Shown here: piece after piece, positions 1 through 19,198 of the stretch
How positions within the stretch are numbered: the stretch's first letter is position 1
Layout of the letters: every line of letters begins with the position of its first letter
Assembly: GCA_943704425.1 (NCBI GenBank)
Contig: CALSCP010001071.1
Span: 1-52,500 of the forward strand
Direction: 5' to 3'
Source: Ministeria vibrans ATCC 50519
Taxonomy: Eukaryota > Protista > Filasterea
DNA length: 52,500 nt
Made by a program: the position numbers and the translations under genes
Notes under the pieces: model-generated
The model's input: only the letters and a program-made list of their open reading frames with translations
Told to the model about the DNA's origin: nothing
Databases searched by the model: none

Positions 1-82
<82 letters not shown>

Positions 83-98
83 TATTACTATTATTAAT
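1..98 (+). repeat. (TTA)n microsatellite, probably intronic
   Basis: Near-pure TTA run, upstream of a splice acceptor at 198-199. Confidence 0.95.
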
Positions 99-199
99 TT
101 TTTGGAAATGTCTTTCTCTTGCGTGGTGACTGTATCATTAATAAATGGGTTGTATTCTTCTTCTTCTAATTATTTTATTATTACCATTTCGCCATACAG

Positions 200-1114
200 G
201 CTCGCTGCGCGCGTCACCTCAAAAGCACGTGTACACCCGACCCCATGCAGCGATTGACATTTCACCGTACTCATCTTCAACGCTGGCCAACAAGACATAC
301 AGCGCGGCGACCCTTATGACCACCTACGACTCAACACATAATTCTGCTGCCGCCGCCGCCTCCTCCTCCCAGTCCGCTGCCGTTGCCGCGACCCCCGCAC
401 CGGACAAGGCCATTTGCGTGCGACCCATTCACATGTATGATCAGGCAAACGGCGAAGGAACAGAAGACATTCCTGAGGATGACCGTAAGTGAAATAATAA
501 TTTAATAATAATAATAAATTTATTATTTATTTTCTTTTTCGTTAATCGCTCTGTTTTTTTTTTTCTCTTTGCATTGGCAGCCCGCACAAATGATTCCGTG
601 ATCCAGGGCGTCTCAGGACCGTACCGTGTGTTGACGTACTTTACGGTTGAGATTGGCGGCTATCCGTCGACGCTTGCAGAGCGCTGGGACGAGCTGGATG
701 TGCGGGGGTTTCTGCTCAAGGACGATTCGTATGTGCGCACTCGCCTTGGTGAAATCATCCACATGTTCTTCGACCCCACCACGTCAAGTGTCTGGATCAA
801 AACAAATGTCTCCGCGTAAGACTATAGATATACTACACTGTAGTACCTCGACTGTGCTAAGTTATTAATGACAAAATATAATAATAATTAATTATTATTA
901 TTATTAATAATAATAATATTATTATTATTTTTGTTGTTTTTTTTTGGTTTTTTTTAGGTATCAATTGAAAACACCCGACCCATCGTATGATGATTACTTC
1001 AAAGCGTTCAAGCGAGAGATCACTGGATCGTTAGTGCAAGGCACGGATCAGGAGGCAGACTCACCGGCAGAGGAGGAGGAGCTCGAAAACGATATTGAGG
1101 AAGATTCAGACTAA
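200..1114 (+). CDS. 3' exons of a protein ending in an RFTS (DNMT1-RFD-like) domain plus acidic tail; 5' part lies outside the window
   Basis: Exons 200-484, 581-815 and 958-1114 splice in frame with GT-AG. The product PYRVLTYFTV...LDVRGFL...RLGEI...VWIKTNVSAYQLKTPDPSYDDYFKAF fits the RFTS pattern (r.Lt.F...lG.I...iWi.T..a.Y.L..P...Y..f). Confidence 0.65.
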
Positions 1115-1667
1115 GCGATAGAGAAAGAGAGAGAAAAAGAAAGAGAGAAAAGTGATAAAGAGAGAAAAAGAAAAGGAAAGAGAAAATGAATAGAGAGAAA
1201 CAATGATTATTATTATTAAAAGTATCAATGATGATCTTTTCGGCGATTGTATGAAATTGGCAAACAATTGAGATAAAAAGGTAAAGAAGCTCCAACAATA
1301 GATGAAAAATGCAATGAGAGTATTGTGCTGCTCTTTGTGTTTTGTATATAGTTTTGTTTTGACATTGAGTAGAAATTGAGTACAGCTCTCGATTCTCTAT
1401 TTATTTCCTACTAATAAGATAAATTATTGGTCATTGGCAAAAATGATTGCTGCACTTTCACCCATAAACCGACTAAGCTGATGCTCATTGTGGACTTAGC
1501 GGAGTGAGTCGCATCGCTTGCACAACAGCAAAATAAAATCCTTTTCTTTGCTGATACCAGAATACATTGGGATTATATACATATGTATGATGAGTACAGT
1601 ACAGCGGCAGAAGCCAAACGCGAGCGCAGAGCGCGGCGCAGCGGTCCCTGTCGCCTTTGCGGGGGGG

Positions 1668-2152
1668 TCAAACGAGCTTGGCAGTCTTCCTGCGCGCCTC
1701 GCCCGTTGCGCGTCTGTCGCTGTCGCTGTCGTCGCCGCTGTCGTCGTCGTCGGGTGCGCGACGACGCCTGCTCGACGCCGATGGGGTGTCTCGCGCCGTC
1801 AGCTTGTAGAACTGTTGCAGCAGCATGTTGCTGGGCACCGTCGTTAAGGCTAGGAAGGCAGACAGACGCGCCGTGCGAGTCAGTGGCGCCAGACGAAAAA
1901 AACACGTCAAAATATCGTTTCAGTTTTGGTACCTTTTTCAGGCGATTGCTCGGAAACGGTCGCCATATACACCGTCGGGCTCGCTTGATGGTGGACATGG
2001 CTGCCTGTCGAGTCATGCGCGGCACTGGCGCTCTGTAGAAAAGGAGTGTCGGACGGAACAGTCGTCGGCGTGTGGGGCGTTACCTTGCTGGCCACCTGTC
2101 CAAAGGCACCCGCCGTGAACACCGGTAGCCCTACAAAGAACTCTCGCTGCAT
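1668..2152 (-). CDS. DDA1: DET1- and DDB1-associated protein 1 homolog (3 exons)
   Basis: Spliced product MQREFFVGLPVFTAGAF...PTVYMAT...EKALTTVPSNMLLQQF resembles DDA1 FLKGLPVYN...PSVYLPT...IIVTEKTNILLRYL and is of similar small size. Confidence 0.8.
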
Positions 2153-2219
2153 GGCCAAGAGTTGGGAAAATGACTGAAAGTTCAAAGTTGAGTGAAAGTT
2201 TTGAAACACGACTGAAAAT

Positions 2220-2240
2220 TGACTCATGAGTCATGACTCA
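2220..2240. promoter_or_regulatory. Three adjacent AP-1/GCN4-type TGA(C/G)TCA sites between divergent DDA1 and Moonraker
   Basis: tgactca-tgagtca-tgactca. The last copy overlaps the predicted Moonraker ATG. Confidence 0.4.
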
Positions 2241-4744
2241 TCACTTATATACTCTTGCTGCTCAAGCCCATGTCGGTAATTTATGTCGAGTGAACTCGTA
2301 CAGGACGCGACCAACCCGCTCTCTCCTTCTTCCAGCTGCTCAGTCGAGCGCCCCAGTTGCGCTTCAATTTGAATTCGACGCCCAACCTCTACAACGTCGA
2401 AAGCGTCGCGCACGCTCCCTCGGCATTTACCTTTACCAACGATGGAGTCATCTATCGCAGCACGGTATGTGCTCTCCGTCTAACACAAAAGAAAATATTT
2501 CAAAAAATTCGTTTCATTATTGTTTTATTTTGTTTTTGCTACACAGTTGTGTGAGGAACGGACAGCCAGCGACACATCGGACGCAACGGTACGGTAGAGC
2601 TTACTCATTGATGTGCAACCGTCCCTCCTGACATGTCTTCTCTTTGGCGTTCACCCCAGTCGGTTCTGTCGGTGCAGACGCAGCTGCGAATGCGGGCGGC
2701 GCAACGGCTTGCCTCGTCCGACGTTGCGCGCGGACACAGCGGCACACGCGACGGACTGGCTGTGCACGGACACGATGGCCCTGCACGCCACAGGCCTGCT
2801 GTACATGGACACAATGACACACTCGACGGACCTACTGTACATGGACACAATGGCACACTCGACGGACCTACTGTACATGGACACAATGGCACACTCGACG
2901 GACCTACTGTACATGGACACAATGGCACACTCGACGACGACGACGACGAGGGCCATCAAGAGCCGCAGCCTCAACCGACGCCAATTGAACCTCCTCAGCA
3001 GAAGTCTCGTCAATCCAAACCACCTCGACTTCTCGGACCAAAACTGTCGCCCAAGGCAGCGGCTATTCATGATTTGCGTCTCATTCAACAGCGACTGCGC
3101 GATGAACGCCTTCCGGCACTCATTGCGGCACTACAGGGTGCAATTGACTTGTCAGCACACGGCAAGGCCAACGACGACCAGGACAGCCTGGATGACGTGC
3201 GCTCGGCCATTGCGCACGAGGCAGCGTCGGACGGGCGACGTCGTCAGCTCTTGTATGACCTGTCGGTGCGCGTGCGCGACGCACGACAGGCATGTGAGCG
3301 ACGTGGGGTGCGCGATGAGGAGCGCTCGTTGACGCGCGCCGTTCGACTGGTTGCTGCAGCGCATCGGTCAGTCGTGCGCGCACTCGAACATTGGTTGACG
3401 CACATGCACGCACTCCGGTCGCGACTGTCGTGGGGTCAACTATCGGCACTGGGCGAGTGTGTCAACACGATTCGTCACCTGTGCATGTGCTGTGCGCAAC
3501 TGCGCCTCGATCCGTCTTTGCCGTCACTCGACGAGTCCGACCCCCGCTATCTGCGCGCCCTTGCCCATCTCGAAGTTCTTCTTGAGAGCTCCGTGGTTGA
3601 TGAGCGCTTCCGTGCAGTCGTCACCGTTGTCGAGCAGCGCAGCCAACAGAAGAAGAAGATGAAACAACGACAGCAACACACACAAAAGAGTGCTCCACCT
3701 ACCAGCGTATCTCAACGGTCCACAAGAGCATCCACCAGCATACCTCAACGATCCACCGGTGAGCCTTTGCGATCCTCTAGCAGACCTCAGCGCCCGCCCG
3801 CGCGTGTGCCCCCTCCCCCATCTTTGCTGCCTTCTCGTGGCTACCTTGTTCCTTCCCGTCTCGATGCTCTCCGCCAAAACCTTCATGACATTGCCCGTCA
3901 AATGGCGCAGCGTCGTCTCCTTCAACTCAGTTGCAAAGACGATTCAGAGCGACTACCACAACGAAAAGAAGAAGAACAAGAGCCCCGCAGAGGAGAAACG
4001 GACCCTGTACCAACTCAGACGGGTGCGTCTGCTCCGCCGTCTGCTCCGACTGGGCCCGAGCACGAAATTGCTCGTCAGCTGTGGCTCGATCGCATGGAAC
4101 AAGAGCACTTACGACGTCTCGAAGAGATTGAGCGCACGGCAGCACAGACTGCGCAACGCACCGTTGCCAACGCAGCAACAGCAACCGCATCGTCCAGTGC
4201 CACCCGTGCGACACACACTCCTCTGCCTCCTCCCCTGTCGGATGAGCGGGCGCAGCGCATGCTGACACTTTTGCACGATGTTGATGCAGAGCAGGAGGAC
4301 ATTCGCGCCCGCTGGCAGCACGTCCAGTACGCCTCAAAGGTCCCAGCCGAACGCGATGCTTCCGGTGTCCTTCGCTTTACCGCCAAACAACCTCAGCAGT
4401 CTCAACCACAACTACAACCACAACGTTCTCCTGCTCCGCGCCACTCCGAGTGCCCCACTCAGCTGTACATGCCGCAGTCCATGCTCAAACGTGTTGAGCA
4501 ATACAAGGTAATTTTGAAGGTGCGCAATGCAAAAGCACACAATACGCTGATCGTTCTCTAGGATGCGTTTGACATGTACAGTCACGGACGACAGTTGCGC
4601 AAGGACGAGCACTTTGATCCGATGGAGGTGCTCGAACGCATCGGAGACGACGTGCTCTCTGCCGTGCTCATCGATGCTGCCGGCGAACTCACCACCTTCT
4701 GCTCCGAATTGGCAGATGTGGTGGTTGATCGCGAATTGATGTAA
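2233..4744 (+). CDS. KIAA0753: Moonraker/KIAA0753 (OFIP) centriolar protein homolog, multi-exon; start uncertain
   Basis: Motifs QLRFN, LLYDL...RLVAAAHRSVVRALE...IRHLCMCCAQLRLDPSLP and the C-terminal FDPMEVLERIGDDVL...ELTTFCSELADVVVDREL match recalled KIAA0753 blocks (LAAAHRGAIRALQ, FNPW...ELQDMCEDYAEAVFTSEF). Last exon is 4562-4744. Confidence 0.8.
2750..2938 (+). repeat. 36-bp coding minisatellite (GHNGTLDGPTVH), about 4 good copies plus a degenerate one
   Basis: gacggacctactgtacatggacacaatggcacactc is repeated in frame. Confidence 0.9.
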
Positions 4745-4834
4745 AGAACCGAAAATAAATAAATAATTATCAATCAACAGTATAAAATATCACTCTCCTT
4801 TTCTCTTTTGTCTTCCCTAAAACTTAATTTTTGA

Positions 4835-5755
4835 ATGTCAGACCTATTGTCAGTTATTCGCGCGGAAGAGGAATACAATGCAAGTGTTCAAAAGCTCACA
4901 CAAGGTTTAGCGGCTCTGCTTTTTGTTTTTTTGTTGTCTGAGTTGTTTTCCGATTCAACTTTGTTTCGGCGCAGTGGCCAATGGGAATGAAGAACTGCGG
5001 GAAACGCTACGCACGGCAAGCGAGCGTGTGAGCAGTGCATTGAATGAACAACAGCAGCTCATTGAACGACAGGCGAACGCTCAAGTGGACTTGGAAGCGA
5101 CGCAAGTGAGACGCGATTGTGTGTTGCGTCAGTTGGCGCGTCTTGAAGCGTCACGACGCGCCACCTGCGAGCATGAGGTATGCAATGGGCGCACACATGT
5201 ATTTGTGTACCGTCGCACTACAAGTAATGCCAATCCATAGTCTAAACGGTACCGTTGAGAAATGTGGCGCTAAAACCAACCTTGTTCGCGTTTTCCAAGT
5301 CTGTGCTGGAGCGCGAAAATCAGTCGACGACGCATCGTTTGAAGGTGACCTTTGAAGCACAAAAAGCACACGAGGCGACCTGGGAAGTGGATGCGGTGCA
5401 CGAAAAAGCAACGGAGCTTGTGATGCTGCAACTGGAAAACGAAAGTCTCACGAAACGTACACGACAGGGACGACAACCTACCGATAGCCGCTGACATGCG
5501 TGTATGTATATAATGCGCAGAATATTCAAGTGTAACACGACTTCAGAGTCAACTCAGTGCCCTCAAACAACGACACGAGCAGCTTCAAAAAGAGGTCAGA
5601 CGACAAAAGTCAGACAGGAGTCGAATATGTCTCTCTCTCTATGCCACTCACACTAATTGTAGTGCTCTGAGTCACGCGCTCGTCTTGATCACTACCGGGG
5701 GCGCCAGAAGTCGCTTTATGGCGAGCTGCGTCGTCTACAGCACGGATACAAATAA
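4835..5755 (+). CDS. Uncharacterised coiled-coil protein, multi-exon
   Basis: ATG at 4835 (MSDLLSVIRAEEEYNASVQKLTQ), several E/Q/R/L-rich exons flanked by GT-AG, TAA at 5753-5755. Internal boundaries are uncertain. Confidence 0.55.
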
Positions 5756-5774
5756 AAACTTCTTTTAATCGATG

Positions 5775-6770
5775 TTACAAGCTGTGTGTGTCGACAACAA
5801 AGCGCAGGCCAAAATGGTCGGAAGGGTGCAGCGGGCCCACTGTTGGGCGCAAACCAATAAGTTCAAAGTCACGCACAGTGACACGCTGGTCTGCGGACGA
5901 GGCAAGGTAGGCACGGTCAAAGCGACAGCGGGCCACAAAGGTAGTGCGCGCATTGGGATTGCGCGCTAGGTCCCATGTAAATTGTTGGTCTTTGGAAGCG
6001 CCCGCGGCTGTCCACACATCTACTGTGCGTGTAGGAAGTCCACCAATCTGTGTGATTTCTGCATCACGCGCGTTCGCGTCGCCAGCAAACACCGCAATGG
6101 CTTTACTGCCTGTTTTGGTGTTGTCCGTAAGACGTTCAAAGACACGCTTCAGTTGGGCCTTGCGCTGCGAAGCGGCCGCCTTGAGTGACTCAAGATGCGA
6201 CGTGTACAAGTTCAAGTGAATGCCGCGCCAGGTGAACGAGCCGCCGAGGAGGAGACGGCCCTGTTGCGACGATGCAAAGTGCTCCTCGTCAAACTCTTGG
6301 GGCAGTCCGACCGTCGAGCGTTTGGTGAACATCATGACAAAGTAGGGTGGCCAATCGTCCTGTCGCGGTATGCGAAAGTAGCCGCGCTCCTCTAGCAGTT
6401 GTGCCACAATTGGCAGTCCTTCACGCGTCATCTCCTACAAACAAACAACCATTTCGCATGGTTTGTCTTGTTTTCTCTTCACCAAGACGTCGTTGGGACA
6501 GTGTGGACGCACCTGGAGAAAAATGACATCGGGAAGGTTCGCATCAGCTTCGTCTGGGGGTGCCATGATGCGACAGGCGGAGCGGAGGCGCTCGGGGAAA
6601 CGAGAGGGAGTCTCGCAGGCAAGACCGTCGACGTTCCAACTCAACACCTTCAGCGAACCTACCACCGAGAGGGCCGCTCGTTTTCGACTGCTCTCGTGAG
6701 CATGGCTACCAGCGGCATCGTTGCAGTCGTCCTCACCGTCATTGTCAGACGAGGCGCGACGTTTGCTCAT
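5775..6770 (-). CDS. TDP2: Tyrosyl-DNA phosphodiesterase 2 (EEP family), 2 exons
   Basis: LSWNVDGL, DVIFLQ|E, TSHLES, FAGDxN, FTWD, CRFDR and PSDHFGL motifs. Confidence 0.9.
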
Positions 6771-7091
6771 GTGACGAGTTGGGATGCGACTGAGCGGGCG
6801 CAGTGTTGAGAAGCACGGGTGCGTCGCCACCACTCGTAGCAGCGAAGAGTGTAGACGAATCGTGCACGATCAGCAGGCCAACACAACTCAGAAAATAATG
6901 ATTATGATAAAAAAGAAAATCGCGTAATATTTTGTTAGTTTCACAGTTTGTTTTCTATATTTCAGAGTTGTTAATTTTACTCGTCTTTGCATTATTGTGC
7001 TTGTGCTGCTCTCTGTTTTGTATTAAATATGAATAATATTTATTAATAATAATAATAATTATTATTATATATTTTTAAGTATCTTATAATC

Positions 7092-8614
7092 TTATTGTGC
7101 GATGGGACGCGCCAGAGTGTACGAGAGCTCACCAAGCGCCTCGACGCCATTGAAAAGCGCAACTGGACGCATGGAACCGTCGTTGGCAAAGAGGAGCTGA
7201 GGTCGTTCAAGGCGAATGTAGGTCTGGGAGTCACCTTGAGACCAGTGCACGGTGTAGTGGTAGGGCTCGCGTTTGGAGAGGGACCAGGTGACGCCGTCGC
7301 GGCTGTAGAGGAGCTTGGCATTGAGTACGCCCGTGGGACACATGCCGTGGGACAAGATGTGGTAGCCACGATGATCGTACCACAGGAAGGGATCCTCAAA
7401 CTGTTGGTTCGACAGACAGTCCCAAGGGCGCTTGCTCAGCGGCTCGAGTGACAGCAACGTATACGGCCCACGCCACGAGTCAGCCCGTGCAATGCCCAGC
7501 ACCTCAGTGTGTCCGTGGCAGTAGCCAGCGGTGAATGCAAGGAGCGTTGTCCCATTGGCGTGAATAAACGGCGCCGGATTGGACCACGAGCAATTCAAAA
7601 GCTAATGCAAAGACGCAATGTTATTGTTATTATTATTAATTGAGTACACCTCTCATTTATTTTCTCTTATTATTATTATTATAATTCTTTATATTAATTG
7701 CGCATGGTATATAAAAATTAAACAAGGGTATTGTTGCAATAATTAATTGTATAAATTATGTTGCTTTGAGCTAGCAAAGAAGCAATATTTGACACAAAAC
7801 GTTTTATATTGATCAAAAATGCCATTCAAAGACATAATTCTTGTACCTTTGAGCCTTCGGTGTTGTACAGCTGTAGCTCAATTTGCGACCAGGGACCATA
7901 GAGAGAGGACGACGAGGATACCATGAGCCCACTGTTGACCGGTGCAGCGGACCGTGTTTCTCGCGTGTGGGACGTCGCTTCCGTGGTGCAGTCGACGGGT
8001 GTTGTGCTGTTGTCGCCATTGCCAATGTGGAATATGTGATACGTTCCATTATGTGCATGTACGGTTGGGTTATGGGAAAAGCGACTCACAGCCGTGTCGT
8101 GGTATTGGTAAGGGCCGTACGGAGAAGATGAGATGGCATGAATAATCTCGCTGTTAGTGCCCCAATGTTTCAGCTATGAGAAGAAGGTGAATTGTTAATG
8201 ATTCAGCTGAGCAGGAAGGAAAGGTGGCTTGGATGAATGTTTGCACTATGAGAGGTGAAGTGATAATAGCATTGGAGAGAGGCACATAGTGCGTCTCTGG
8301 TGCCCACATACCCCGCAGTGCAGCTGCATTTGCGCAGCATACAGATGGTAGCGGCCGTCGGGCCCAACAATCGGGCGGCCGCCCCACGACGCCCAGCCCT
8401 GCGGACCCGTCTGGTTGCGGTAGCCGACGACAGTGCGGTTCGTCGGCAAGAGCGCCAGTTGGCGGCAGTCGTCCGAGCCAGTCCAGGCGGCGTCGCACGC
8501 ACACACTCCGCCAACGCAATCTCCATTCAGTGCGCAATCAAAGCTTGACTTGCACTCTGCCGAGCAGTACACCAATGTTGCCAGCGAGACGAGAATGACG
8601 ATGAGATGTTTCAT
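7092..8614 (-). CDS. Secreted EGF-like + GH43-like five-bladed beta-propeller glycoside hydrolase, multi-exon
   Basis: Signal peptide, DCALNGDC..CACDAAWTG EGF module, then SWGG, HNPT, NPAP, EDPFLW and ERP motifs. Confidence 0.75.
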
Positions 8615-12547: not shown

Positions 12548-14323
12548 TCATTTCCGTTGAGCGTTTAAGAGCTGAGAGAGACGGACAATTTCAGAGTCTC
12601 GCTCGCACAACAGACGACGCAAATCATCGGAGGTCAGAGAAGGATCATAGTGAGATGATGAAGGAGAAGGATTGAGAGACAGTGTAGTACAGGTAAGAGT
12701 GGCCTTTGGCGGGGGGTCGACAAAGAAGGAGGAGTGGAGAGCAGCGAGGGCAGAGGGACGAGTCTCACTGGGCGAGCGGGCGAGATCAAGAACAAAGCGA
12801 GACTCGCGAGGATATTGGGCAATAAAGTCGGGCGGGAGAGTGTGTGGGGGAGAGCGAATGCGATCGACCAATGCAAACAGCTCCATTCGACTGTGGATGG
12901 AGGGGCAGAGTGTCTCGAGTGCAACAATGGCAACGGAAAAGACATCGTCCTGCGCGCGTGGCCAGTGCGTCCCTTGCAGTTGCTCGGGCGACGCGTACAG
13001 TGAAGTTCCGACGGCGGAGGTGGAACGCGTCGTTGAAGTGGAAGATGAGGACGAGGATGACGAATGATCCGGAGTTGCAGAGTTCTCTTGCGGCGATTTG
13101 GGTCGTGATGTGGGGTTGATGTTGATTGCCAGACCGAAATCGCCTAGTTTGACGTGCGGGCGAGAGGAGGAGGAGGAGGGCGAGAAGACAAGAAAGAGAT
13201 TGCCGGGTTTGATGTCGCGATGGACAATGCCGCACTGGTGAACGTGAGAGAGACCACGAAGGGTTTGACGGATGAGATCGCGACGGAGGTCCGGAGTGGA
13301 GTGGGCGGCGTCGGGAGAGACGAGCCATTCTTTCAGAGAGGAATGACAGAGCTCCATGTGGATGAAGAGACGCAGAGCGGGCATGTGAACGGTTGGTGTG
13401 GTGGGCGTGCTGCATTCGTGATGGTCAAACACAACGTCGTCGTCTGAGTCGTCGCTTGCTTGTGACGCATCGTCGTCGATCATGTCGTCGTCGAGTGTCT
13501 CGATGTGGAACGATGTGGTCGAGTCGTGTTGCTGCTCGACCCATGCACCGTGGTAGCGAACAATGTGGGCGTGGTCTAGACGAGCAAGAAGCTTCACTTC
13601 GCGCAAGACCTGACGGTACACGTGGAGGTTGTTGCTGGTGAGTGGCACTCGCTTGATGGCATACTCAAGTCCGTCGAGTCGATGCGTAGCACGCATCACC
13701 GCTCCAAATCCTCCCTCTCCCAGCTTCTCGTGCTCCTCAAAGTCCTGCGCGTACCTCGACTGAGACGGAAGCGGCGTGAGAGGCAAGTCCATGCTGTTGG
13801 TCGAGCTCTCGCGTTGAGAGGGATGGTCGGCCGAGACCGGCACCAGGGCCATCGAGGAAGAGGACGGGAGGGCGACTGACGCGCGCGCCTTGGCCAGGTC
13901 AAGTGTGGCAAGACCCTGCTGCATGGCGTACTGCACAAGGGCGCTGGGGTCGGCGGCGGGAGGGGCGGGGGAGGCGGCAAAGGCGGGGCGGGCGCCGGGG
14001 ACGAGCGAGCGAGGGGACGGGTCGCTCAGCTTGGTAGCGCGCTGGATGATGGCGCGAATGAAGAGGCGGTAGGTGTCGCGGAGGTGTCGCACATCGTCGC
14101 GCATCGTCTCGGCGTCAACCATTCCCATTCGGATGAGTTGCGACGAGACAAACTTGAAGATGGTGTGCGTCCCACAAATCGTCTCGAGCAGCGACACAAG
14201 CAGCAGCTGCCCACGTCGCTGCGGCGTGTCATAGATGGATTCAGTCGACGATGCAGAGGAGCCCAACGACGACTCTGCTGAGCGAGACATGGAGTCAAGA
14301 GACGAAAATTGTGGAAATGACAC
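12548..14323 (-). CDS. EIF2AK1: eIF2-alpha kinase, HRI-like, intronless
   Basis: N-terminal QLLLVSLLE (HRI signature), SRYAQDFEE..LGEGGFG, YAIK, REVKLLARLDH, an acidic kinase insert, LFIHMELC, HRDIKPGN, DFGLA, GTSLYASPEQ and a C-terminal coiled coil. Confidence 0.88.
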   Translation of the reverse strand: MSFPQFSSLDSMSRSAESSLGSSASSTESIYDTPQRRGQLLLVSLLETICGTHTIFKFVSSQLIRMGMVDAETMRDDVRHLRDTYRLFIRAIIQRATKLSDPSPRSLVPGARPAFAASPAPPAADPSALVQYAMQQGLATLDLAKARASVALPSSSSMALVPVSADHPSQRESSTNSMDLPLTPLPSQSRYAQDFEEHEKLGEGGFGAVMRATHRLDGLEYAIKRVPLTSNNLHVYRQVLREVKLLARLDHAHIVRYHGAWVEQQHDSTTSFHIETLDDDMIDDDASQASDDSDDDVVFDHHECSTPTTPTVHMPALRLFIHMELCHSSLKEWLVSPDAAHSTPDLRRDLIRQTLRGLSHVHQCGIVHRDIKPGNLFLVFSPSSSSSRPHVKLGDFGLAININPTSRPKSPQENSATPDHSSSSSSSSTSTTRSTSAVGTSLYASPEQLQGTHWPRAQDDVFSVAIVALETLCPSIHSRMELFALVDRIRSPPHTLPPDFIAQYPRESRFVLDLARSPSETRPSALAALHSSFFVDPPPKATLTCTTLSLNPSPSSSHYDPSLTSDDLRRLLCERDSEIVRLSQLLNAQRK

Positions 14324-14822
14324 AGACGATCGCGAGAAGTCAAGTCCGAATAACTCAACCGGCGATCAGAGGCGCTCAGGACGCCGTCCTGGGCAAGGAC
14401 AGGATGAAAAACTAGAGTGGAGACTCTAAAGTGTGCACAGGAAGAGATAAGAGAAGAGTATCAAAAGAGTGATGTGGATGAAAGGAAAATGTAAACAAAA
14501 GACTGTTCGAGAAACGAAAATATTCAAACTTCAATCGAAGGACAAAATATTTATATGGTTTGTTGGCTGCGAGTAGATGTATGGGTGCTGGCCACTGCTG
14601 GGACAGGAAAGATTGTGACAATGAAGAGATCTCGCGGCGCCTGACGTTTGTTATTTTTTTGGGGGGTATGGATTGATCATTGGTGGATCATTGAACTTGG
14701 TTTAATTGTTTATTACATGACTGTGATACCATCTAAGTAAATCCTGAAAAGCACAATAATGCGCACAACAACACAAACAAGACGCTCCAGTCCGTCATGA
14801 GACAGGAAAGAGTACCATCTTG

Positions 14823-16273
14823 TCAGTTACCACCGTCATCCAGCTTTCTAAGGGTCGCCAAAGCCGATTTGTTGTTAGGCTGAAAGTGTAGCGCGTCATT
14901 GGCTGCTCTGCGCGCACTCTCCATGTCGCCCATATCAAAGTGGATGCGCGCCAGCAGCGCGTGCAAATTGGGGTTTCGATGGCACATATTGATCGCCTTA
15001 ACACATTCAGAAAGTGCTTCAGGTAGCATCTGCAGATTGGCGAGAGCCGAGACACACGTCTGTCGTGCGAATGTGTGACGCTCGACTCGGGCAAGCACAA
15101 TCATCGCATGTTTCTTTGCCTCTGTCAGACTCTGGCGCGTCTGCTCGGCCTCTCCTTTGTCGCGCAGCAGTGCAGCCGCAAGCCATGCACGCGCTTCATT
15201 TGCATTGGTCTCATCAGCCTCAATTGCACGCTTGGCCGATGCCTTGCAATTGTCCCACTCGCCATTGATATGGTGTATCTCCGCGCTAATGCCATGCGCT
15301 TCGCACGCCCAATATGGCGCTGCTTCGTCGCACAATGCAATCACTTGCTCGTACACATCCTTCTTCTCGTCCGCGGTTATCGGATTCGAGAAGCGTACAC
15401 AGCGTGCCAGAGTGCATTTGACACGCGCACGCGTCAGCTCGTCAACACGAGTGTCATTTAGCACCTCGTCACACACCTCCTTGCATTCGGCCATTGTCAT
15501 GTCACACCTGCTCACAGACGGCATGTCGTATCGTTTGAGGGCGATTCCCTTCCACATGAGCAGTTGTGCGCGCTCCTCTCGCCTCAATTGTGTGCTGTCC
15601 TGAAGAATCGTCGAGACGTGCTCCACGACATTATAGTACTGCGCCATCTGCATGAGCCGTTCACACTTGATGGTGTGATCTACAGTGTCCACAAGTGTCA
15701 TATGATGCCATGGGCAATGGATGTTGATGTACCTTGCACAGAGAGGTTACAGTCCACAAGTCGATCTGTGATGGTTTTCTTTGCGCTCTTCAAATCAGAC
15801 TGCTCCTCATGCGTCACCCACTCAACGCCGTCCAGAAGGACATCGAGCGTGTGCACAATCTCTTGCGCGAGCTCAAGGCGTTCGTCGGCGGTCAGCGGTG
15901 TGTCGTCGCGCAGAGAGCTGCCGCGATGCGCTTGATCGTGCCGACACGCCGACAGGGCCACAAACAGCTCTTGCGCCGTCCCCTCGGCCGGTGCCTTCGC
16001 ACACCGTGGCTTCATGCGCTGCAGTGTCAGCGAGAACAACGGAGACATTGTTGTTTCGACGCAGATCCCTTTGAAGAGCGAACAACGCGCTCCCGTCCTG
16101 CACAGAATGCTCAGGTCGCATTGGGACGGGTCTTTCCCACTAAGAACTTCTCTTCGCTTGAGCTCCCCTGCCTCGCGTGCGCGGAGGAACAGTTTCTGGA
16201 GCAATATAATAAGAACATTCTCAACTTCAGTCACAATTGGGTCCAGGGGCGACACAGATGACATAGAGATCAT
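14823..16273 (-). CDS. Putative HEPN-domain RNase fused to C-terminal TPR repeats (2 exons, about 465 aa)
   Basis: The GT-AG intron 15680-15732 joins the two ORFs in frame. The N-terminal helical domain has EVENVL, DLSIL and RHDQAH (Rx4H at 15926-15943). The C-terminal half has TPR-type units such as ALSECVKAINMCHRNPNLHALLARIHFDMGDMESARRAANDALHFQPNN. Confidence 0.65.
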
Positions 16274-16399
16274 AGGGAGGATGTCTGGGGGTAGAGGGAG
16301 CACAAACCACAAAACACGAAAACACGTTTGGACTGAGCACTGATCACTCTAAAGTGAAAGTGTAATTTCAAAAGGAATGATGCAATCAAAACAAACAAA

Positions 16400-17385
16400 A
16401 TGGGAAAATCCCTTTTGATCTCAAAACACAAACACGTCGTTTGTTTAAGTTTACACATCGGTTTCTTGTCTACATGATTGATAAACCAATCAGACAGCTC
16501 CTCACAGAGTTCCTGCAGCAGGGAACGAGTCAGGAGATGCGAGGGAAGCGAAATAAGGTGGTCCGAGTAGTGACGGAACTTCTCTGCGTCGACGAAGTGC
16601 GCCGTGCGGGCTCCAGCGCGATGGGGACGGACGTGGACAGTTCCGATGTTGATGTTGTGCCGGTCTTCTTCGAGGCGCAGTGCCCAGACAACTACAGTTC
16701 GTGGTTGGACGGCAAGTTGGACTGTATTGAGGAATGTATCGCAGACGATTCGCGTTTTGAGCTGCGGAGAAGAGCGCACTTTCTTCTTCAGTACTGCTGT
16801 ACGATTGATGGGATACCCATCAACGTTGACATTGTCCCTACATGCAGCGCCGGCATTTCGCATCCTGAGCGTCTGCCGTTGAGGTAAAATTCAGCTTTGT
16901 TGTTTTCCGGTTGTTCTTCTCCGTCAAATGTCAAAATGTTGTGTGTGTGTAGTTACCGAATCGTCGCCGACACCCCACAACAAGTGGCGTGGGTCAAACG
17001 GATGAAGTATCTCATAGAGTCTGGCAATTGCCCGAACCATTGCAAGGCGGTTATCCGTCTGCTCAAGCTATGCATGTCCCGTCAATCCTTTTCTCCGCCC
17101 AGCGTTGCGCTTCACCTTGTCACAATCGACACAGCCAGGACGCTTCCCACCACCGCGTCTCAGTGGGATCTTCTCGAGAAGACCGTTGAACGACTGGCAC
17201 ATCCCGAACGACTAAAAGTCACGTGGGACAAGAGCACGCATCACCCTGCTCCAGTCGTCCTCATACCCTCCGACGAGCTTGAGCTTAATGTCTACGAAAA
17301 CAGTACTCCCAACCGGTGGAGTGACCAGCTCGCCGCACTCATGAAAGTCATTCAAGAGGACTACTCGCGCATTGTATGCGATTAA
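16400..17385 (+). CDS. OAS/CD-NTase-like nucleotidyltransferase (about 280-285 aa); start at 16400 via an extra intron or at 16474
   Basis: GSSAMGT..SDVDVV (16609-16653), third Asp in VDIVP (16828), intron 16884-16952, then OAS C-lobe-like QVAWVK, KAVIRLLK, PPSVALHL and PVVLIPSD..LNV. Confidence 0.85.
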
Positions 17386-17409
17386 AAAAAAAGCCATAGT
17401 ATATTAATT

Positions 17410-19198
17410 TTACATGATGGAAGTTTCGCGACTGGTACAATTTGCATCTTCGAGCGTCCTTGAGACATCCTCGACAAACCGGTCTCGTTTGCGCTGGTCT
17501 TCTTCCTCTTGACGTACCAGCTTCTCTGCTTGTTTGTTGATGACTGTCTTGCGTACCGTGTGCGCACCCGCACCGGCTGCGGCACCTGCAGCGCCTCCGA
17601 CAGCCACTGCGGCGGCCACACTCATACCCTGTGTAAAGGAGAAAACGAGGATGATGAGGGGAAACGAACTGAATGAGGCAGTGAACAAAGAGAGAGAAAG
17701 AGAGAGAGAGGGAATGAACCCAGCGAGTGAATGAAAAAAGAAACAATGTCAACAACAACAACAACAACATCACAGCCTCCCTCCCCCCTCCCAATTAGTG
17801 CACCCATTACATACCTTGAGCCCCACCGCAATAGCCCCCACCGGGCCTCCCACTGCCATTCCCACCACCATTCCAGCCAGCGTGTACGATGCCGCTTGAA
17901 GCAACGACGCCTATTGTAAAAATAATCATTAGTGACCAATCAATACAAAACATTTTATACACGCACGTTTTTACACACTCGACATAATAGTCCATTTGCA
18001 GAAAAATTAAGCAGAGCAGCTCATGCTATTTTTTTTTTCTCTCTCTCTCTCTCAGTCTCAAGTTCATTCTCTGGATCTCTCTTCACTCACTGTTTTACCT
18101 TTTTGACATTGTCAACTCCCGACTAGAAACAAAAACACAAAAAGAGACAAACAAAGTTGAACACTTGGCGGCTTTCTCTCTATGTGTGCCATTGCTCTTA
18201 CGGTCACAGTGGCATCAATGGTATTGACTGTCTCCTCAATGCGCTGTACGTGTGACCGACTGCGCAGCACCTGAAAGTTCAAGTCGACAAACATCTCGCG
18301 CAGCTGCTCCAGCTCGCCCATCAGCACGACTTGCTGTTCGTCACGGAGTCGCGCCAGACGGACGTCTTCCGTGCGTCTGCGGTCCTCCTCTTCAAGAAGC
18401 AGCAGCTGTCCCTGTGACGGTGTCGCAATGACTGCCGGTGGTGCCACTGTGTCGTACTCGTCATGCGACCGAAGCACCACGCCATACGACGTCGACGCAG
18501 CACTGCCCAGCTGTGTCTGCGGTGCGCCGGCAGCCGCCATGCGTGCGTTGGTGCTGCGCATTCGCTCGCGCTCATATCGACTGTACAGATGATCGTACTC
18601 CTCCTGAAGCGGAATCAGCTCCTGCGTCAGCAGCACGCGGTCCTCGTCGCTTAGGTTCTGCATCAGGCTCTGTGCGTCCATCAGATGTGCGTGTACATCG
18701 TCCTTGATGCTCTGAACACGCTCTACTTTGTCCGGAAAGTCCTAACGAAAATTCGCACAAAAAAAAAAGTTTCACTTTTGAACTTGCGACAGATACAAAA
18801 CGCCACGCTGTCAAGGCGCATTGAATTCTGCAACACACAGACACAAAAGACAGGCTATCGTTGACGAGAGTGCGAAAGGTCGCCCAATTTGGACGAAAAA
18901 TTTTCTCCTTTTCTTTTTTTTTCTGACACATTCAATCGACCAGACGAAATAATTATAATAATAATAAGCGACCGGAACAAAAAAAGAACAAAGGTCAACG
19001 GCCGGAGCCTCAAGAAGCACACCAACACCCTGATCTACGCCAACAGACACATACCTGCGTGGCTATCCGTGCGAATTGGGTCTCCATTTGGCGCAGCGAG
19101 TGAGCCAAAGCCATTGTGATCGATTTCACTTCGTTGCTGTGCGTCGTGGACTCGAGTCGCGAATATCGCCCGCTGTCAAGCATGTCCCCAAACGACAT
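17410..19198 (-). CDS. STX17: Syntaxin-17 (autophagosomal Qa-SNARE), multi-exon
   Basis: SNARE motif ELEQLREMFVDL...HVQRIEETV, micro-exon SGVDNVKK, glycine-zipper hairpin LAGMVVGMAVGGPVGAIAVGLK-GMSVAAAVAVGGAAG and a basic tail. Confidence 0.85.

Follow-up and report, generated by a model that had tools for sequence, protein, structure and literature searches.

We analyzed two genes in a 52,500-nucleotide stretch of DNA from the filasterean Ministeria vibrans ATCC 50519 (assembly GCA_943704425.1, contig CALSCP010001071.1, positions 1 to 52,500), which is called the window here. Gene A lies on the minus strand and gene B on the plus strand, and coordinates are window positions unless another contig is named. 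Our analysis showed that the two genes are expressed from one 200-bp divergent spacer. Gene B belongs to the OAS branch of the Pol-beta-type nucleotidyltransferases, and the product of gene A joins a four-helix N-terminal domain (the N-domain) to a helical part that resembles tetratricopeptide repeats (TPR). We lean slightly towards the view that the N-domain is a divergent HEPN ribonuclease domain. A functional coupling of gene A and gene B is likely, and it is a serious possibility, somewhat short of even, that they are a synthase and its effector, operating in the manner of OAS and RNase L. An earlier note on this DNA, made from the letters alone, had proposed a new eukaryotic immune module here. 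The OAS-like nucleotidyltransferase, the divergent expressed pair and a paired homologue speak for that proposal; however, it remains a hypothesis, as the HEPN domain is unproven, the pair is known in two copies, and three paralogues of gene B are unpaired.

The gene B protein has 280 amino acids and is encoded by two exons on the plus strand (ATG at 16474). Protein searches and folds were run exon by exon, for gene A and gene B alike. For the gene B family, a profile of five N-lobes was built, four from the contigs of the source genome (G000; 29.7 Mb in 2860 contigs) and one from a metagenome contig described below (L009), and it was searched against PDB. The profile matched OAS2 (9h1z, E 4e-10) and pig and human OAS1 (1px5 and 4rwn, E 7e-9 to 1.7e-7). 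The next family was the CdnE-type CD-NTases (E 0.009–0.03), and the minimal nucleotidyltransferases (MNT) were found at E 0.23. With a profile of four N-lobes, the value for OAS was 5.6e-7. We placed gene B in the OAS branch because the N-lobe profile matches OAS2 and OAS1 significantly, and CD-NTases only at about 0.01.

G46-S47, D58-x-D60 and D119 were invariant in all five family members and aligned with the catalytic residues of OAS1 and OAS2. This bears out the earlier note, which had seen an intact set of GS, DxD and a third Asp, and gene B looks catalytically intact. The NTP_transf_2 domain (PF01909) was detected in four of the five members (best E 1.3e-7), and SMODS (PF18144) weakly in two of them (E 0.15). 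Searched by itself, exon 1 of gene B gave in Pfam only an MTPAP-like palm model below threshold (E 1.2e-3), and the CBASS (cyclic oligonucleotide-based antiphage signaling system) cyclase profiles of PADLOC gave weak matches (E 0.0014–0.044). The N-lobe of gene B is the most diverged of the five.

The C-lobe was less clear. The blocks H-C-K-x-V-x-x-L-K and P-V-V-L-I-P-S are conserved in the five members, and exon 2 of gene B gave one weak PADLOC cyclase match (E 0.0025, at profile positions 153–206 of 253). We take these C-lobe motifs to resemble those of OAS, as the earlier note did. However, OAS1_C (PF10421) gave no match at E <= 1 in any of the five C-lobes in Pfam, and profiles of the C-lobe matched no solved structure in PDB, so that the OAS-like C-lobe stands on its motifs and the one cyclase match and not on OAS1_C. 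Culbertson and Levin (2023, PMC10732462) define the OAS superfamily of non-animal eukaryotes by OAS1_C and report OAS-like proteins from 8 of 12 eukaryotic supergroups, so that a protist gene of this type is to be expected. Gene B itself is best described as a new minimal member of the OAS branch that is without one defining feature, the Pfam OAS1_C domain.

The gene A protein has 465 amino acids and is encoded by two exons on the minus strand (ATG at 16273). Exon 1 gave no sequence match in Pfam, PADLOC or PDB. In exon 2, residues 221–277 were matched by TPR_2 (E 1.3e-5) and also by TPR_19, TPR_14, TPR_8 and TPR_1, and altogether nine models of the TPR clan matched residues 215–277, all below their gathering scores. 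The TPRs that the earlier note had placed after the helical domain are thus supported by several TPR models, although each falls just under the Pfam threshold. Neither Ank nor Pkinase nor Ribonuc_2-5A was matched by gene A in Pfam, and no other copy of gene A was found in G000, including a scan with a two-sequence profile of the N-domain.

To find homologues of the N-domain, 1.84 billion cluster representatives were searched exhaustively with HMMER, and four proteins were returned (P0001 to P0004). P0001 is the open frame of gene A's own exon from a metagenome (99% identity). P0002 and P0004 were rejected as homologues; they are tandem-repeat proteins whose scores were summed from many weak repeat matches. 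The only true homologue was P0003, a protein of 521 amino acids (E 8.6e-6 over the whole library and 1e-15 in the pairwise comparison; residues 14–176 are 27% identical). P0003 is built in the same way as gene A, with 27–30% identity in the N-domain and 45–46% in the TPR part, and it has a precomputed PF14559 match that is marked weak. Word-indexed searches with gene A exon 2, with the frame over gene B exon 2 and with P0003 yielded nothing new. Scans of Joint Genome Institute (JGI) metagenomes with TPR and nucleotidyltransferase alignments found no relatives, and searches of viral contigs found none either.

In prokaryotes, fusions of HEPN with TPR and HEPN genes beside Pol-beta nucleotidyltransferases have been described (Anantharaman et al. 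2013, PMC3710099). The same source places the HEPN motif (Rx4-6H) at the end of helix 3, the residue after the Arg being mostly N, D or H. HEPN domains fold as an up-and-down bundle of four helices, the second and third of which are separated by an insert. The Rx4H motif of gene A is R111-H-D-Q-A-H116 and that of P0003 is R-H-A-Q-A-H, with His after the Arg. Two motifs that the earlier note had picked out in gene A, DLSIL (residues 53–57) and RHDQAH (15943–15926), were found there. The longest block common to the two N-domains is L-F-x-A-L-x-A-x-R-H-x-Q-A-H-R-G, and conservation of Rx4H in homologues is borne out by RHxQAHRG in P0003, the sole homologue. E18 and D53 are also invariant between these two sequences, and neither lies in a clear E-x3-[KR] motif, which is the helix-2 criterion for HEPN.

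An AlphaFold2 (AF2) model of the N-domain from a single sequence was unusable (predicted local distance difference test, pLDDT, 45.7). The model from the two-sequence alignment was a helical bundle of medium confidence (pLDDT 63.7, predicted template modeling score 0.59) with helices at residues 10–34, 54–62, 78–87, 100–116, 129–149 and 155–179. RHDQAH closes the helix 100–116 and is followed by a loop. Because this helix ends there before the loop, RHDQAH is placed as PMC3710099 describes for HEPN. When the model was compared with 48,161 chains by VIA-align, the C-terminal HEPN domain of yeast Swt1 (4pqz) ranked second (Z 8.1, root-mean-square deviation 3.4, 129 of 136 residues aligned). The top 50 contained seven more HEPN entries (7ae2, AbiA 8oz7, 5yep_B, sacsin 3o10, Csm6 4rgp, 1wwp and 8xdj). 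The top match of the N-domain in the ESM Atlas was an HEPN_Swt1 cluster (score 0.88), which we treat as a lead only.

P0003 is encoded on L009, a 5.9-kb contig from an ENA metagenome. On this contig an OAS-like gene (862–1919, minus strand, ATG at 1919) stands head-to-head with P0003 (2125–3690, plus strand, ATG at 2125), and the two ATGs are 205 bp apart. The intron of the nucleotidyltransferase gene has the same place and phase in L009 and in gene B (junctions GC|GTACGT ... AG|G and AG|GTAAAA ... AG|T, respectively). The P0003 frame contains an in-frame GT..AG stretch of 48 nt at the exact place and phase of the gene A intron. This stretch would be a putative unspliced intron that was read through by gene calling; if so, the true length is about 505 amino acids. 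The pair has evidently been copied or inherited as a unit, its partners intact and its orientation, spacing and intron positions kept despite divergence to 27–46% identity. The cassette is read as a compact two-gene unit restricted to one lineage. Among the findings that the earlier note had set beforehand as speaking against its proposal were an Rx4H not conserved in homologues and homologues that are never linked. P0003 keeps Rx4H and again stands beside an OAS-like gene; however, this linkage comes from the same or a close organism and concerns two copies only.

The stretch was present in 20 public runs from 9 studies. To check splicing, contigs from four runs, each of a different study and probably of RNA, were aligned to 14600–17500. 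In each of the four runs, one contig was without exactly 15680–15732 and another was without exactly the 69-nt intron of gene B. Because the contigs omit exactly both introns, both genes are transcribed and spliced as modeled. The transcripts are separate: contigs of gene A run from about 14726 to 16298–16358, and those of gene B from 16449–16465 to 17356–17393. About 90–150 bp between them had no contig cover, which fits a small bidirectional promoter. The two divergent genes of the earlier note are thus confirmed as intact, spliced and expressed, with ATGs 200 bp apart.

On this basis the following mechanism can be proposed. The proteins of gene A and gene B would work together as OAS and RNase L do. 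Once triggered, gene B would make a 2'-5'-linked oligonucleotide or a related nucleotide signal, which would be sensed directly or via the TPR part of gene A. The signal would turn on the RNase domain of gene A, probably by bringing two HEPN domains together. In its fullest form the proposal states that the OAS-like product activates a TPR-gated HEPN ribonuclease, and that the linked, co-duplicating unit, besides being the first eukaryotic linkage of the CBASS kind, arose independently as an equivalent of RNase L. We consider this full form unlikely as a whole.

The pair resembles the vertebrate OAS-RNase L system in two respects. There is a synthase of the OAS family, the gene B N-lobe being significantly similar to OAS1 and OAS2, and the candidate effector, gene A, has helical repeats joined to a putative HEPN-type RNase domain with Rx4H. 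However, RNase L consists of ankyrin repeats, a pseudokinase and KEN, with the nuclease at the C-terminus, whereas gene A has an N-terminal HEPN-like domain, TPR and no kinase. Gene A and gene B have a common promoter region, unlike the genes for OAS and RNase L, which are not neighbors. Gene B is also shorter than OAS1 (solved chains of 349–357 residues), and its C-lobe is not recognized by Pfam OAS1_C.

In CBASS, too, the gene for a nucleotide-signal synthase from the superfamily of gene B adjoins that of an effector, the role that gene A would have here, and gene B weakly matches CBASS cyclases and CdnE. CBASS is an operon with a SMODS-type CD-NTase, whereas gene A and gene B are a eukaryotic, intron-containing, divergently transcribed pair and gene B is much nearer to OAS; moreover, gene A is without a Pfam-detectable SAVED, STING or other known sensor domain. 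The C-terminal domain of yeast Swt1 is the best HEPN structural match of gene A, and the Atlas lead is also HEPN_Swt1, but no sequence profile links gene A to PF18731 or to the Swt1-type domains of G000. Gene A would have in common with the bacterial LA2681 HEPN-TPR family the described fusion of HEPN and TPR (PMC3710099). Our literature search turned up no report of a promoter common to a eukaryotic OAS-like gene and an HEPN-like TPR gene. A term search of PMC10732462 returned no instance of "HEPN" and two of "effector".

Several results weigh against the synthase-effector pair. No HEPN family was detected in gene A by Pfam or PDB profile search. A scan of G000 with PF18731 found three other loci, gene A being none of them, and hhalign of the N-domain against these three Swt1-type HEPN segments gave a probability of 0.3%. 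Foldseek against PDB returned nothing at E <= 0.001, and an Atlas search with the P0003 N-domain gave no usable match, so that the HEPN lead was not repeated. In the VIA-align comparison Mob1 ranked first (Z 8.8–8.9), followed by ferritin and Dps bundles, and a second VIA-align comparison gave only Mob1 and ferritin-like bundles. VIA-align itself warns that Z near 8 is common for helical models. The HEPN fold suggested in the earlier note is plausible from the Rx4H placement and the Swt1 match of a medium-confidence model, but the HMM and profile tests gave no signal for it, and Mob1 and generic four-helix bundles match as well. We know of no description of TPR repeats as a sensor of nucleotide second messengers. 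In gene B, Met50 (16621–16623) takes the place of the Lys of GS-x-x-K-G-T in the four relatives and in OAS1/2, and it could lower or change activity. Three intact OAS-like paralogues in G000 have no partner of the gene A type and unrelated neighbors, so that three of the five intact OAS-like genes (four in G000 and one on L009) are unpaired.

The second copy also has its limits as evidence. L009 is assigned to the same or a very close organism because the repeat in its flank (4098–5491), of which G000 has at least a dozen copies at 86–98% nucleotide identity, is up to 98% identical to these copies. The metagenome study of L009 also contains the window's own allele, and genome searches found the L009 cassette absent from G000. 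This cassette is most readily understood as an old paralogue rather than an orthologue from a distant lineage. As the two copies belong to one organism or to very close ones, the recurrence is co-duplication with n = 2. The N-lobe of the L009 nucleotidyltransferase is 45–47% identical to two unpaired paralogues of G000 versus 35% to gene B, and the nucleotidyltransferase trees do not settle the matter, so that orthology of gene B and the L009 enzyme cannot be demonstrated from sequence. The outer flanks of the cassette on L009 differ from those in the window, being a KLC-like TPR_10/12 fragment and the dispersed repeat instead of HRI or the right-hand neighbor.

Gene A and gene B could instead be neighbors only, co-duplicated and with a promoter in common but without mutual action, in which case the N-domain would be a generic or Mob1-like four-helix bundle and gene A a TPR scaffold. 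We take this seriously as a possibility, if one clearly short of even. The structural ranking of Mob1 and the ferritin and Dps bundles, the missing HEPN signal by sequence, and two known copies from one organism or close relatives all speak for it, as do the three other intact OAS-like genes whose neighbors are unrelated, in one case a gene for a large DEAD-box helicase. Many gene pairs in this compact genome have promoters in common, and no conserved element was found between the intergenic spacers of L009 and the window. Among strains, no indels or stop codons differ across gene A and gene B, and the 17 coding differences (12 non-synonymous and 5 synonymous) include none in the motifs discussed here. 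The ratio of 12 to 5 is close to the neutral expectation and may reflect either fast evolution of the immune type or weak constraint; near-absence of selection would suit mere neighbors. However, both genes have stayed intact with the same orientation, spacing and intron layout at 27–46% identity, both known members of the gene A family are paired with an OAS-like gene, and the N-domain is most strongly conserved in its Rx4H block, which argues against mere proximity. A Mob1-like zinc site was set aside, since its second Cys is missing in P0003 and the Pfam Mob1 family gave no match.

The pair could also be a toxin-antitoxin system like MntA-HepT, in which covalent nucleotidylation by the nucleotidyltransferase would hold the HEPN protein in check until infection or stress sets in. 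In MntA-HepT, too, a gene for a nucleotidyltransferase of the Pol-beta fold adjoins a gene for a helical domain with Rx4H; a gene beside a Pol-beta nucleotidyltransferase is the founding HEPN association (PMC3710099); the structural matches include HEPN toxins in complex with MNT or AMPylated by it (7ae2, 5yep and 8xdj); and MNT is a weak match of the gene B profile. We nevertheless judge this rather improbable. Gene B is not a minimal enzyme but a two-lobe, OAS-like one with a C-lobe of 143 amino acids, and the match of its N-lobe to OAS1/2 surpasses that to MNT by about nine orders of magnitude. The Tyr of the Rx4HxY modification site is missing, as the earlier note had observed: the motif continues with R-G in both proteins (RHDQAHRG in gene A and RHAQAHRG in P0003). 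The host is eukaryotic, and the HEPN-like domain of gene A is fused to a long TPR part. Alternatively, gene A might be a protein-binding regulator or adaptor, whose TPR part holds, localizes or gates gene B and whose N-domain is not a nuclease; the product of gene B would then act on another receptor, such as a kinase-KEN protein. TPR repeats usually bind proteins, and the TPR part is the best-conserved part of gene A (46% versus 27–30% for the N-domain). The one kinase-KEN gene of the genome has about 530 N-terminal amino acids without an assigned family, and the hydrophobic tail of P0003 could serve as a membrane anchor. However, an adaptor leaves the conserved Rx4H block without explanation, and we regard it as improbable. 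Against these alternatives, the synthase-effector pair keeps the standing given at the outset.

Positions of the features of gene A and gene B in the window are collected in Table 1.

Table 1. Window coordinates of gene A, gene B and the region between them.
Feature	Position	Strand	Evidence
Gene A exon 1, 180 aa, N-terminal helical domain, HEPN-like candidate	15733..16273	-	AF2 model, VIA-align, Atlas
Gene A intron, 53 nt, GT..AG, phase 1	15680..15732	-	Absent from contigs of 4/4 probable-RNA runs
Gene A exon 2, 284 aa + stop, helical TPR-like repeat domain	14823..15679	-	Open frame; RNA joint 15679->15733 in 4 runs
Pfam-TPR-matched stretch, gene A exon-2 residues 221-277	14847..15017	-	Sub-threshold TPR models
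RHDQAH, gene A residues 111-116, Rx4H at end of predicted helix 3	15926..15943	-	Conserved in P0003
Common 200-bp intergenic region, likely bidirectional promoter	16274..16473	.	RNA contig ends
Gene B exon 1, 136 aa + 2 bases, OAS-like nucleotidyltransferase N-lobe	16474..16883	+	Five-sequence profile
G46-S47 ... S57-D58-V59-D60, catalytic loop and first two carboxylates	16609..16653	+	Invariant in 5 members
D119, third catalytic carboxylate, in V-D-I-V-P-T-C	16828..16830	+	D-x-x-P-T-C invariant in 5 members
Gene B intron, 69 nt, GT..AG, phase 2	16884..16952	+	Absent from contigs of 4/4 probable-RNA runs
Gene B exon 2, 143 aa + stop, helical C-lobe	16953..17385	+	Conserved blocks in 5 members

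The earlier note had placed the pair between HRI and STX17. The left neighbor (12548–14323, minus strand) is indeed an HRI-type eIF2-alpha kinase, with the PF22949 HRI2_3H helical domain and a split Pkinase, but the STX17 label had no Pfam support on the open frames tested. Since the HRI-type kinase is not found beside the second cassette copy, nothing indicates that it is part of the cassette. The right-hand neighbor is convergent, and one of its contigs in run X6 ends at 17377 and is followed by a run of 23 T, that is, a poly(A) tail on the opposite strand. The 3' ends of gene B and of this neighbor overlap, because 17377 falls inside the range of gene B transcript ends.

The three intact OAS-like paralogues in G000 have the two-exon layout of gene B, and their exon ends align at the gene B intron site. 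One of them (L006, G000:C2373:31000-40999; 6415–7525, plus strand) stands head-to-head with a very large gene (2–5846, minus strand). The large gene has a frame of >1700 amino acids with DEAD, ResIII and Helicase_C, and upstream of it is an extra frame of 281 amino acids. The genome could thus contain a second pairing that looks antiviral. A frameshifted OAS-like fragment (L028, G000:C1968:6878-10021, about 1438–1725, plus strand) is close to the paralogue on C2825 and loses its frame just before the GS loop, which suggests gene birth and death in the OAS-like family.

Some observations were also made on L009. The C-terminal residues of P0003 from about 495 to 521 (L009 3607–3690) are hydrophobic and resemble a tail anchor, and gene A is without such a tail. 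The repeat at 4098–5491 is found on G000 contigs C312, C2647, C43, C2596, C2043 and others, at least 12 copies in all; it has frames of 140 and 208 amino acids without a Pfam match, with stop codons in some copies, and is probably a mobile element. A segment of 81 nt (1326–1406), which lies mostly inside the intron of the OAS-like gene and reaches a few bases into exon 1, is 100% identical to G000:C1961:15515-15595 on an unrelated contig and may be a small mobile insert. KLC-like TPR_10/TPR_12 repeats occur at L009 190–647 and at >150 places in G000 (e.g., C556:39827-42580 and C1679:101106-103094), where they sit inside open frames of 1000–2000 amino acids; an expanded NLR-like protein family would fit this pattern.

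We also looked for RNase L in the genome. A single kinase-KEN locus was found in G000 (L033, G000:C1199:5800-9600; 592–3327, minus strand). The first 530 or so residues of its protein had no Pfam match and no ankyrin repeats, and it may be Ire1 or RNase L-like. A typical RNase L was thus not found in G000, this one locus being without ankyrin matches.

To our knowledge, RNase L is the only established receptor of the OAS product. Among the CD-NTase-type proteins of eukaryotes, the OAS-like enzymes are the most widespread (PMC10732462). What OAS does outside the pathway of RNase L, in sponges and protists among others, is a question of long standing (PMC2852836). Gene B alone adds a member to the protist OAS-like proteins already reported, and what is new is its pairing with an HEPN-like TPR gene. 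In organisms without a typical ankyrin-repeat RNase L, OAS-like enzymes might act as is proposed here for gene A and gene B, and the pair makes this testable. Should the coupling fail, a minimal, fast-evolving enzyme of the OAS family would still be seen here in a clean and expressed form. If the coupling is true, a synthase-effector linkage like that of CBASS operons would exist in a eukaryotic genome as well, together with a new type of sensor.

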